Source: Blepharisma stoltei ATCC 30299
Lineage: Eukaryota > Protista > Ciliophora
NCBI GenBank assembly: GCA_965603825.1
Contig: CBFDEM010000057.1
Location: 434,001 to 498,000, forward strand
Direction of reading: 5' to 3'
DNA length: 64,000 nt
Position numbers and translations under genes: made by a program. Positions 1,848 to 5,978 of the stretch are shown here, one piece after another. Under the pieces are notes generated by a model. The model did no database searches, had not been told where the DNA came from, and saw only the letters and a list, made by a program, of their open reading frames with translations. The stretch's first letter is position 1. Each line of letters starts with the position of its first letter.

Positions 1848-4610
1848 ATGGCTAAGGGAAAATTGCAAAAAAAGCTTATGTGCAAGACTCTTGGCCCAAT
1901 GATATTAGGAATGATTTGCACTGTCTTTATTTCATATATTCCTTTTTATTTCCAGTACCCTTCTTGGATAGATTCTATTACAGACAAAATGTTAAATGAT
2001 CAACAAAAAACTTTGCTTCAATTAACTAACAACTTAGCCTCATCCACAGGGTGATCTTTACAATATCCTGTAAATTTTGTTCTTTTAATGAAAACTCTTA
2101 TAGAAGAATACTACGGTGGAACCTTAAAAGTAAAATCAGATTTCAATTCTGCGAATAATTATGTTAATGCTAGATCATTTGCTTTTGGAGAAGTAGAAGG
2201 GTTTGACAATAAAAGTATTTATTATGATTATTCTATGTGATATCTAGGCCCGCATCTTTTAGAAACTAGTGAGCTCAACTCAGCGCAGCTTCTTGAGCTT
2301 AATACTTCAGGGGTTTTCGACTCGTTTTTGAAACCAATTGCCTTGCTCAAGGCAAATTATTCAGGAATTTTAGATGTGTCGTATATTGCTTGGGATCAGG
2401 AAGGCTTATTTTACATGCAGCCACTTGGGTGAGAAACATATTATGTGGATTTTGAGCAAAAAAATTGCTCCTATATAAATGAAACTGAATCCTACTATGA
2501 TCCAAGGTGTAGATTTTGATACAAGGCTCTTAAGAATAGCACAAATCAGAATTTAGCTGTTATTAATAAGCCTTACGTGTTCGCAAGTGGAGCTTTGGGA
2601 CAAACTGTATGTGCAGGCTACTACCCAAATAAAGAACTTGAAATTGCTGGCTGTATCGATTATTTACTAGAAAATATAAAAAAAATCCTGGAGGTTGTAA
2701 ACATCCCAGGCTCAAAATACGCATTTGCAGTAACTACTGACGCTGTCCCATTTATTCACCCTAAACTCAACACAAATGCTTCTGAATTGCCGTCTATCCA
2801 AGAACTTGAATTTGGTGCAGATAATCTTGATTCTTCTGAGTGCGGAAAATTCAACGATACTATTTTTATAGATTTGCAAGGAGATAGAGCTTTAACCTCA
2901 ACTTATGACGTTCAGCAGAAAAAATATTTAATCGCTATTTCACCAATTAATTTAACGATGGGGATGGATGGGACTATTGAAAGGATTGGAAGTATTGGCA
3001 TTCGGCTTGCTGAAGAGTATATGACAGCAAATTTTAATGATCTGAAGGACTCGTTGAAAAATATTATTTATATTGAAGGAATTGTGCTCATTTTTGTGCT
3101 CACAGGGATTTTGATTATGTGCTGGCTGCTGACACGATGAGTTACTGAACAGATCGTGAGGCCGATGGACGATTTATTGGAAATCCTTGATAGGATGATG
3201 AATGGAGATTTAGATGTAGACATCGAAGATCATTATCAAGTTTGCTCACAGGAACTGACCAGCTTGTACTCAGTTTTTGGAAAGCTGAAAGTGGTTTTGA
3301 GGTTTAGAGAAAAGGTGTATTTTTCTGAAGAGTCTAGAGCAGTCATGAACTATGCTCAAGCTTTAGCTTTATTTAACGAATTTCGGAATATAAAAGGTGC
3401 TGGAATCTGCTATAATAACCTTGGAACAATACACTTCAAAAACAAAAGATATTACCAAGCTGCTGAGTGTTTTGCCAAAGCTTTAGAATGCGCAGAAATG
3501 CTCAACCAAAGCAATGAATTGATAATAAAAAGAAAGCATCTTCTAGCCAAAGCATTACTGCATACAAAGAATAATGATAGAAGAGCCGTAAATTTATTGC
3601 TGGATATAGCAGACAGCTATAAAACTGACACAGACGATTACTCCAAGCTTGTGTCTTGTCTATTAGAAGTAGCAGAAGTTTTAATCAAAAATTGGGGAGA
3701 AGGTAGACATCAGCTTATAGAAGCTGAAGGTATTTTAGATCGAGAAGGGACGTTTTCGACTCCCAAAAATATATTATATGAAAGACTGCTGTACTGCAAA
3801 GGCTTATTGCTTGTGAAGCAAAAAAAGCTAAAAGATGCGTGCAAGACTTTCACAGAAGCATTAGAAATCAATGCAGATTATGACCCTGATGTTAGGAAAA
3901 GCTGCCTAGAAGAGCTGCTAAAAATTTTCAAAGAGCACAATCAGCCGACTTTTCAAATAGAAGAGCTTCTTGAAGACTTTGAAGACCCTCCAAAAGATAT
4001 AGTGTTTGTCTTGGATTACAGTCTTTCAATGAATGGTAGCCGAATCCAAAAAGCGCTAAACAGCATTATCAATGTGATTGATGAGCACGTTAGACCAATT
4101 GATAAAATCGGGTTCATTATTTTTAACAAACAATGTGAAGTTGTATTTAATCTCACCCATAGAGGAAATGATCCTTCTCACTTAAAATCTCAAATCATGA
4201 GATGAGACAGTCCGAAAGGTGGCACTGCATTTTATGATGCAATTATGTTGGCTTTGGAAGAATTCCAAGCTTATAGGACACAAAGCCTGTCAATTCTACC
4301 ATTCGAAGATGTATGCAAAAAAGTATCAAAGAGGCTACAATGGATCGTAGCACTAACAGATGGAGAAGATAATGCAAGCAAAACGCCTTATTTAAAGCTA
4401 AAGAAAAAGCTGAGAAAATCTAAAGCAAATTTGGTAACTATTGGCCTAAATTTAAGCAGAACTGTGATGCCAATTATTGCGAACTTGTGCGAAGCCACTG
4501 CAAAAGGAATTTTTATTGAAAGCGCATCACTGGCAGATTTAGACTTAGCGTTTAAAACGTTGATTTCTTTGGTGGCTTGCAATATGCAAACAATAGAAAG
4601 TCTGGATTAA
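1848..4610 (+). CDS. Membrane receptor-like protein: TM - dCache - TM - HAMP - TPR - vWA (920 aa)
   Basis: Four track ORFs are in one frame, separated only by TGA. YDPRCRFWY dCache motif; HAMP-like RPMDDL..RMMNGDLD..QELTSL; TPR GICYNNLGTIHF; vWA MIDAS DYSLS / GGT / LTDGED. Confidence 0.88.
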
Positions 4611-4625
4611 ATGTAATTATATAAA

Positions 4626-5978
4626 TTATGATCTGAGCCATTGCGCTATATAAGCTTTTATATAAGTCCTGGCTCGAGTTAATGAGGCTGGGTCTGTGGA
4701 GTTAGGAGTTTTAAAATCTATGCAGTGCCCACAGAAATCGCATTCAATTTTGAGGATAGGCCTCGCCTCAGTGCTTACTGCATTGTTACTGGCCCATTGC
4801 CATGGATCTTCACTTCCATTTGTATATACAATATTATTAGCTTTATAGCTTAGCCCAGCTGCAGTAATATTGGTGTTTGGCAGTGTTATCCCTCCTGGAT
4901 ACGAATAAATTTGTTGGCAATACCAGTTCCAAAACGTCATATTTAAATAAGAAGGCCTCATTTGATACTCTGAAGGAGTCTGAAGTCACCCGAATTGCTG
5001 GCATTGCTGCCACCACCATTGTCGATCCATTACATTTTGCGCAATGTTTAAATTCTTTAGTGCAGAAACTGCATAAGCATTAGGATTAGCTAGTCCATAA
5101 GTGTTTCCCACAATAGAAACTTGTTTTAGCTTGTCCCATGGACTTGAAGCTGAATTCAACGCCTGGCATAGCTCCACTCTTTTTCCATACTGAACCATTT
5201 CTGCCATAGTATCTGCAATATACCAAAGTACTGTGATTTGGTCAGGATCATTACTAAAAACACTTGTCGCATTAAAAAGATCAGTAATAACTGTCATATT
5301 TCCAGCAATATATTGAGATTGGATCAAGTTATTGACTGATTTTATAGAATCCACACAGTTTTGGCCGCTTTTTGCAGTAGATATATAAACTTGTTTATCA
5401 AAGTCTGAAAAATCCAATATTGGCCTTACAACTGCTGAGGATGCCCAAGCTGCTGTTGCTAAATTTGGGTACCTGGTGCGGAACCATGCACTTAATGCAC
5501 CTGCATAACTCCCCCCTATAACCACCCATTTGGGAGGGATGGTGGTTTTCCTTATTTCTTGCATTTGAAAATTCATGTACCTGATAAACTGAGCGATATC
5601 AGCTAAAGCTTGGTCTACATCGTGGTATTGGAAAATTTGTTGAAATAATCCAGTGTTGTTTATAGGGATTGATACTCCATAATAACGATGCTCAAGTGAT
5701 ATATATCTTGCGGCATTTTCTTTAGCCACCTGCAATGGGAATAAAGACTTAGTTGTAGAGGTTACACCTTTGCATTCGGACTCTCCACACAAATATAAAA
5801 ATATCGGTCCACTAGCCACATTCCAATAATCATCTATCACATAGTATCTTTGTGAGAAAACTCCAGCTTCTTGTACAGGAATATGGAAGTGATCTATAGT
5901 CTGATTATAATAAAACACCTTTTGAGTGAAATTTTGAGCGCCCACAAGACCAAGGATCACACAAAATAAAGGCACCAT
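4626..5978 (-). CDS. Serine carboxypeptidase S28 family protein (secreted/lysosomal, 450 aa)
   Basis: Signal peptide, QTIDHF, LEHRYYG, GGSYAGALSAWFR nucleophile motif, GHCID catalytic His; two track ORFs joined through TGA (QQFG-W). Confidence 0.93.

Follow-up and report, generated by a model that had tools for sequence, protein, structure and literature searches.

A membrane receptor of Blepharisma stoltei with a dCache-HAMP sensor and a TPR-vWA output, of a type shared with Asgard archaea

We analysed a 64,000-nucleotide stretch of the Blepharisma stoltei ATCC 30299 genome (contig CBFDEM010000057.1, positions 434,001 to 498,000; hereafter the window, whose own numbering is used throughout) and found that a gene at 1848-4610 on the forward strand encodes what is probably an amino-acid receptor with a non-enzymatic output, built from tetratricopeptide repeats (TPR) and the metal ion-dependent adhesion site (MIDAS) of a von Willebrand factor A (vWA) domain, and possibly working with a short partner protein. 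An initial annotation made from the sequence had presented this receptor as eukaryotic. Proteins with this architecture over their full length abound in Asgard archaea and are also found in a jakobid and in giant-virus metagenome-assembled genomes (MAGs); the architecture is thus shared with Asgard archaea rather than specific to ciliates, which goes beyond what had been proposed. Receptors that couple a double Cache (dCache) domain to a HAMP domain are textbook prokaryotic sensors feeding kinases, cyclases or chemotaxis arrays, and the non-enzymatic output of the present family sets it apart from them. Because the family extends over Asgard archaea, giant viruses and scattered protists, with no full-length member found in bacteria, it is a candidate for a signalling system that eukaryotes have in common with their archaeal kin.

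Sensor and output of the receptor

Hydropathy analysis revealed two transmembrane (TM) segments, TM1 at residues ~15-35 (1890-1952; all features of the gene lie on the forward strand), after a Lys-rich N-terminus with 5 Lys among its first 13 residues, and TM2 at residues ~406-428 (3063-3131), with a hydropathy peak of 2.6. Because there are two TM segments and the N-terminus is Lys-rich, both the N-terminus and the vWA domain are predicted to lie inside the cell, the side on which the initial annotation had placed the output. The region between the two segments (residues ~36-405; 1953-3062) was assigned as an extracellular dCache domain from an AlphaFold model, Foldseek comparison and a family profile. 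Nine N-x-S/T sequons lie within it, together with four Cys that are conserved in the family (207, 221, 255 and 269), as expected of an extracellular eukaryotic domain. Hydropathy, model and family profiles agree on the chemoreceptor-like order TM1-ectodomain-TM2-HAMP that had been read from the sequence.

The expectation that the ectodomain would model as a double Cache fold was borne out. The AlphaFold model of residues 36-405 (predicted local distance difference test, pLDDT, 94.7; predicted template-modelling score, pTM, 0.90) begins with a long N-terminal helix, after which come a distal and a proximal PAS-like module, the arrangement that characterizes dCache domains between their TM segments. 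The 50 best listed Foldseek matches to this model all contain dCache and are led by amino-acid chemoreceptors, with PctA (5ltx) at the top (E 5.7e-11); match probability was 1.00, and template-modelling scores normalized by target were 0.5-0.69 for isolated ligand-binding domains. A profile of 52 family ectodomains, with the Blepharisma protein as its first row, was compared with the PDB and matched the PctA ligand-binding domain (E 4e-22), CACHD1 (2.8e-21) and alpha2-delta-1 (7e-13), as well as CtaA, Mlp24, Mlp37, PctB and PctC. Model and profile together support a true dCache fold. The domain exceeds bacterial dCache domains in length by ~120 residues.

Within the distal module, profile alignment to PctA and conservation identified an amino-acid-binding motif comprising Y217, R222, W224, Y225, Y243 and D271 (2496-2660). 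It runs Y217-D-P-R-C-R222-F-W224-Y225, then 17 residues, Y243, 27 residues and D271, starting at 2496 with the spacings originally claimed. In the family profile alignment the six residues correspond to PctA Y121, R126, W128, Y129, Y144 and D173, so that the motif is complete by comparison with the dCache_1AA motif of Gumerov et al., which is defined by PctA Y121, R126, W128, Y144 and D173 (PMC8915833). The 17 residues between Y225 and Y243 fall within the 13-17 residues that separate the parts of that motif. In PctA, the R126A and D173A substitutions cripple amino-acid binding (PMC8915833). The ligand class is predictable from sequence, and we infer that the distal pocket would accept an alpha-amino acid or a very close derivative.

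TM2 leads directly into a HAMP domain (residues ~429-486; 3132-3305) composed of amphipathic sequence AS1, with a Pro (P439) nearly invariant in the family alignment, a G-D-L connector and AS2. When profile A3, covering the 69 residues after TM2, was compared with the PDB, it matched the Af1503 HAMP domain (E 8.9e-6), and its best 24 matches all contain HAMP. An AlphaFold model of residues 426-920 (pLDDT 89.8, pTM 0.76) consists of a helix-connector-helix unit, ~12 TPR helices and a vWA fold; helices 427-451 and 468-485 form the HAMP unit directly after TM2. The family profile and this monomer model support the placement of HAMP after TM2.

The remainder of the cytoplasmic half is a TPR solenoid of ~12 helices (residues ~495-709; 3330-3974), for which Pfam TPR_1, TPR_2 and TPR_12 pass their cut-offs, followed by a vWA domain (residues ~716-909; 3993-4574) that scores 44.1 bits against the VWA cut-off of 23.8 (PF00092). 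Its MIDAS is intact, with D723-x-S725-x-S727 (4014-4028), T793 (4224-4226) and D838 (4359-4361), and Foldseek matched the vWA model to the vWA domains of ITIH1, TFIIH p44, ANTXR2, integrin I, BatB and alpha2-delta. Pfam searches of the protein at E <= 0.1 found no kinase, cyclase or methyl-accepting chemotaxis protein (MCP) output (MCPsignal, HATPase_c, GGDEF/EAL or cyclase domains). Pfam and the model therefore uphold the proposed output, a TPR array plus a MIDAS-intact vWA in place of an enzymatic or MCP domain. Because TPR and a MIDAS-intact cytoplasmic vWA are present and enzymatic domains are not, a non-enzymatic output through MIDAS and TPR protein interactions is the most economical reading.

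The protein ends in a tail, I-E-S-L-D (4593-4607), whose Glu917 is conserved in the family. Of 97 relatives with an intact MIDAS, 82 carry the tail motif [VILMF]-E-x-[LFYIM], versus 3 of 16 relatives that have lost the MIDAS. This distribution suggests, as a lead only, that Glu917 is a candidate intrinsic ligand of the MIDAS.

Reading frame, genetic code and transcription

The coding sequence at 1848-4610 is a single open frame of 920 codons ending in TAA, provided that TGA is read as Trp at its six in-frame occurrences (2052, 2238, 2430, 2517, 3138 and 4203; span 2052-4205). An identical 920-aa sequence is present in a public protein collection (P0158), where it was reached via a 77%-identical fragment. 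UGA is read as Trp according to the Blepharisma stoltei genome paper (10.1101/2021.12.14.471607), and two features of the gene bear on this assignment. The motif Trp, W224, is encoded by the TGA at 2517, and 35 of 52 relatives have W at this position. Furthermore, Trp616 (3695) is polymorphic between TGG and TGA when the assembly is compared with contigs of two public runs, which shows directly that these codons are synonymous in Blepharisma stoltei and confirms TGA as Trp. Readings of TGA as Gly or Cys were rejected given this polymorphism and the alignment of the 2517 codon with the motif Trp. A bacterial or mollicute source for the window was likewise rejected, since its assembly contains eukaryotic rRNA genes and relatives of the protein carry the name Blepharisma stoltei.

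The gene had been described as invisible under the standard code because it is split into four open reading frames (ORFs). The count was too low: six TGA codons yield seven pieces, five of which are standard-code ORFs of at least 50 aa. Pfam recovers TPR, half a vWA and a weak HAMP from the seven TGA-free pieces, and no dCache, the pieces being too short.

Contigs from four public runs are colinear with the gene across 1851-4604 without joints; they end at the ends of the gene, and none covers the intergenic interval 1707-1813. Because the contigs are colinear and free of joints and the intergenic interval is uncovered, the coding sequence has no intron and the gene is probably transcribed. 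Variants in these contigs comprise 27 synonymous and 7 non-synonymous changes, a split that reflects purifying selection on the receptor gene. The product of its convergent neighbour (4626-5978, reverse strand; one in-frame TGA, at 4988) is a serine carboxypeptidase of family S28 (450 aa; Pfam, 183 bits), an amino-acid-releasing enzyme, and adjacency of this kind carries little weight in a ciliate.

Relatives, paralogues and a possible short partner

At E <= 1e-3, an exhaustive family profile search returned 549 cluster representatives, many of which are 850-950 aa in length. Stentor coeruleus (OMJ78293.1) and Fabrea salina have the closest orthologues (41% identity), and named family members include proteins of the jakobid Stygiella and of an 'uncultured virus' on a 650-kb contig. 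Full-length copies are also present in three giant-virus MAGs (IMG/VR contigs L021, L022 and L023); a scan of the viral contigs with the single protein P0060 gave no match, and matches were obtained with alignment A6. A search that took the HAMP-TPR-vWA region of one canonical member as its query retrieved ~70 full-length proteins of the same architecture, two of them on one 3.16-Mb contig, which NCBI names as Heimdallarchaeota, Hodarchaeales, Candidatus Hodarchaeum mangrovi, Kariarchaeaceae, Odinarchaeota, Promethearchaeota or 'Asgard group'. Among ciliates the architecture thus extends to Stentor and Fabrea, and it is not restricted to ciliates.

Among bacterial and archaeal species-representative genomes, all 17 near-full-length matches were archaeal and no full-length bacterial member was found, the bacterial matches covering only vWA or only Cache. 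The nearest ESM Atlas cluster is likewise 100% archaeal (features 0.98; structural TM-score 0.57 over residues 4-917). Among the full-length archaeal matches (L037, DATKZI010000011.1, and L047, CP070761.1, among others), one is labelled Bathyarchaeia and several are labelled Thorarchaeota or Odinarchaeota; these MAG labels may be imprecise. In quick LG+G4 tree searches, which are less safe against long-branch artefacts, the Asgard clade and the heterotrich clade each received support of 100, and the Blepharisma protein grouped with the Stentor and Fabrea orthologues at 99. Because the tree is unrooted, it does not decide between vertical descent and an old transfer. Within the literature library covered, queries that paired dCache with ciliates or with Asgard archaea yielded no paper describing this receptor family, and none that links Asgard archaea to dCache.

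Blepharisma has four full-length paralogues: a tandem pair on C2, a single gene on C50 and a divergent copy on C12. A further long-class copy (L011, C4:695769-697463) contains a TAA that splits it into ORFs of 350 and 415 aa, and is possibly a pseudogene or the holder of a tiny intron. The three other aligned Blepharisma full-length paralogues belong to a second heterotrich subclade that has lost the MIDAS and mostly kept the sensor motif. The motif (YRWYYD) and the MIDAS (DSSTD) are retained together in the Asgard, virus and jakobid groups and in the Stentor and Fabrea orthologues; by this comparison the 1848-4610 gene is the ancestral-type copy, the sole Blepharisma paralogue among those aligned to keep both. 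One tandem copy, C2a (P0017, L010:588-3638), reads Y-T-W-F-N-K for Y-R-W-Y-Y-D, with three ligand-contact residues changed and the MIDAS lost, and is a candidate for binding a different ligand.

The initial annotation had overlooked a short dCache-HAMP protein whose gene is conserved beside the long gene in other genomes. At seven gene-called loci, six from named Asgard assemblies and one from a metagenome contig, a gene encoding a dCache(+HAMP) protein of 459-544 aa comes no more than ~15 bases after the long gene. Our own ORF and hidden Markov model (HMM) scan detected the short neighbour at nine further archaeal loci and at 3 of 3 giant-virus loci, bringing the loci at which the two genes adjoin to 16 archaeal and 3 giant-virus loci and the P0081 contig. 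Blepharisma has eight short genes (a tandem pair at C4:947.7-950.9k and single genes on C30, C13, C24, C11, C45 and C18; loci L013-L019), none of which adjoins the 1848-4610 gene. Their 505-534-aa products fall into two subfamilies and have a TM-dCache-TM arrangement with a HAMP-like tail and no output domain, and only the C4 pair retains the motif Arg. In a tree of the sensor half, the Blepharisma short class groups with the Asgard short partners (Shimodaira-Hasegawa-like approximate likelihood ratio test, SH-aLRT, 100). HAMP domains work as dimers, and the conserved gene pair therefore suggests, by analogy, that long and short proteins could form a two-subunit receptor.

Amino-acid metabolism recurs around the Asgard pairs. 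A gene for an Orn/Arg decarboxylase N-terminal-domain protein (~600-640 aa) lies beside 4 of 6 pairs (L026, L027, L029 and L030), and aminotransferase genes lie alongside a fifth (L025).

Mechanism, rival readings and known systems

In the mechanism that we propose, an alpha-amino acid or very close derivative would bind the membrane-distal dCache pocket, and the signal would run through TM2 and the HAMP bundle, hence through a dimer, to alter the binding properties of the TPR-vWA arm. The metal site of the MIDAS would then capture an acidic residue of a cytoplasmic partner or, alternatively, the receptor's own Glu917, which would serve as an intrinsic ligand that can be switched. A heteromer with a short dCache-HAMP protein encoded in the same genome may be the working unit; in Asgard and giant-virus genomes the short gene invariably neighbours the long one. 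The long-short gene pair and the C-terminal Glu thereby offer two concrete, falsifiable ideas about mechanism, and Stentor and Blepharisma would open the way to cell-level tests that Asgard archaea do not yet permit.

Several observations weigh against this reading. Of the four domains sought by HMM search, TPR and VWA pass Pfam in the Blepharisma protein, whereas the two sensor-side domains fall below their cut-offs and are assigned from family profiles and the model. Pfam dCache_1 (PF02743, gathering score 45 bits) gave no match at E <= 0.1, and a scan of the Blepharisma genome with PF02743 returned 11 loci that do not include the receptor locus. The orthologues score 20-22 bits and paralogue P0001 reaches 30 bits, below the 45-bit cut-off, and the Asgard and virus-group relatives pass at 57-66 bits. 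Likewise, HAMP and HAMP_2 score 13.9 and 14.7 bits (PF00672 gathering score, 25 bits), and relative P0040 passes Pfam HAMP at 29.8 bits. The C-terminal tail is modelled undocked at pLDDT < 50, and its association with the MIDAS reflects few independent losses, mostly in one heterotrich subclade. The tree that places the Blepharisma short class is a quick LG+G4 search with a long-branch warning; since long and short genes are unlinked in Blepharisma, the heteromer is carried over from other genomes, and the amino-acid-metabolism neighbours belong to Asgard archaea, not to the ciliate. The public runs behind the transcription evidence are only guessed to be RNA, and none of the family members has a known ligand, partner or phenotype.

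A more far-reaching scenario, to which we give tentative credence at best, is that a two-subunit, long-plus-short Asgard receptor was passed to early eukaryotes and survives in heterotrichs, jakobids and giant viruses as an enzyme-free, metal-dependent vWA switch worked by the receptor's own C-terminal Glu, and that it may lie at the root of the dCache and vWA pairing in alpha2-delta and CACHD1.

Among the rival readings, the strongest keeps receptor and output as described and changes the ligand to an amine, a polyamine or another small carboxylate. The specificity of the dCache_1 pocket shifts with few substitutions, and sensors of amines have arisen from those of amino acids (10.1101/2023.04.06.535858). 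At the position of the carboxyl-binding Arg, Glu or Asp is found in most short partners and in several Asgard members, a swap that recalls this step from amino-acid to amine sensors, and the decarboxylases flanking 4 of 6 Asgard pairs are amine-producing. The Blepharisma protein itself, however, keeps this Arg along with the whole motif, R222 and D271 included, the counterparts of the two PctA residues whose replacement cripples amino-acid binding. For this receptor we therefore rate a different ligand class as possible and rather unlikely.

The initial annotation had also raised a Trp-derived mating pheromone as ligand, which would be gamone 2 (blepharismone). The sequenced strain responds to gamone 2 (10.1101/2021.12.14.471607), the papers found report no receptor for it, the molecule has a carboxylate and an aromatic ring, and Blepharisma has several paralogues. 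By its name in the same paper, however, blepharismone is a derivative of lactate and has no alpha-amino group (10.1101/2021.12.14.471607), and the motif, which serves to bind alpha-amino and alpha-carboxyl groups, has stayed the same between Asgard archaea and Stentor and Fabrea, the sources of the closest orthologues, which argues for an old and general ligand. If any copy had changed ligand, paralogue C2a would be the likelier one, and the pheromone proposal is weak for the gene studied here, an unlikely reading by a wide measure.

Still less plausible is an auxiliary protein of the alpha2-delta/CACHD1 kind, with vWA and dCache both outside the cell and acting on a channel or surface protein. 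The family profile matches to CACHD1 and alpha2-delta-1 and the match of the vWA model to the alpha2-delta vWA speak for it; against it, the dCache domain is uninterrupted, the vWA lies downstream of TM2, HAMP and TPR, HAMP domains sit on the cytoplasmic side of TM2, and the protein has two TM segments and a Lys-rich N-terminus. A relic of gene transfer that is decaying or has no function, to which the patchy spread among eukaryotes and the TAA-interrupted paralogue might point, is just as improbable given the excess of synonymous variants, the intact motif and MIDAS, the full-length frame with Stentor and Fabrea orthologues and the confinement of coverage to the gene body.

An amino-acid receptor with a MIDAS/TPR output, our preferred reading, has its nearest counterparts in Asgard archaea, where proteins of ~880-950 aa annotated as 'tetratricopeptide repeat protein' or 'VWA domain-containing protein' have the same order of TM, dCache_1, TM, HAMP, TPR and vWA (for example, P0206 and P0225 on CP070760.1, and P0222 of Candidatus Hodarchaeum mangrovi). 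They share the amino-acid motif, the MIDAS and the conserved C-terminal Glu with the Blepharisma protein at ~20-25% identity. In the Asgard genomes the short gene directly follows the long gene, whereas the two classes are unlinked in Blepharisma, and the Asgard proteins lack the ~120 extra ectodomain residues and the two presumed disulfides of heterotrichs.

The bacterial amino-acid chemoreceptors PctA, PctB, CtaA, Mlp24, Mlp37 and Tlp3 share the TM-dCache-TM-HAMP front, its fold and its ligand-binding residues, and differ in their output, an MCP signalling domain feeding CheA where the Blepharisma protein has TPR and vWA and no MCPsignal domain. Integrin I domains are MIDAS-bearing vWA domains that bind acidic side chains, including an 'intrinsic ligand' Glu after their last helix. 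The alpha-I and beta-I domains match the vWA fold and are used here as an analogy only, as integrin I domains are extracellular and driven from their C-terminal helix, whereas the Blepharisma vWA is predicted to be cytoplasmic and lies downstream of HAMP and TPR.

The parallel with alpha2-delta drawn in the initial annotation holds in part. Like the Blepharisma protein, alpha2-delta and CACHD1 combine dCache_1 carrying the amino-acid motif with a MIDAS-type vWA in one protein; in them, however, the vWA is inserted in the dCache domain, both are extracellular, and HAMP and TPR are lacking, an arrangement not seen in the Blepharisma protein. The receptor has its parts, but not its architecture, in common with alpha2-delta. 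According to Gumerov et al., a vWA insertion is present in every eukaryotic dCache_1 protein (PMC8915833); the Blepharisma receptor family contradicts this statement and is an exception to it.

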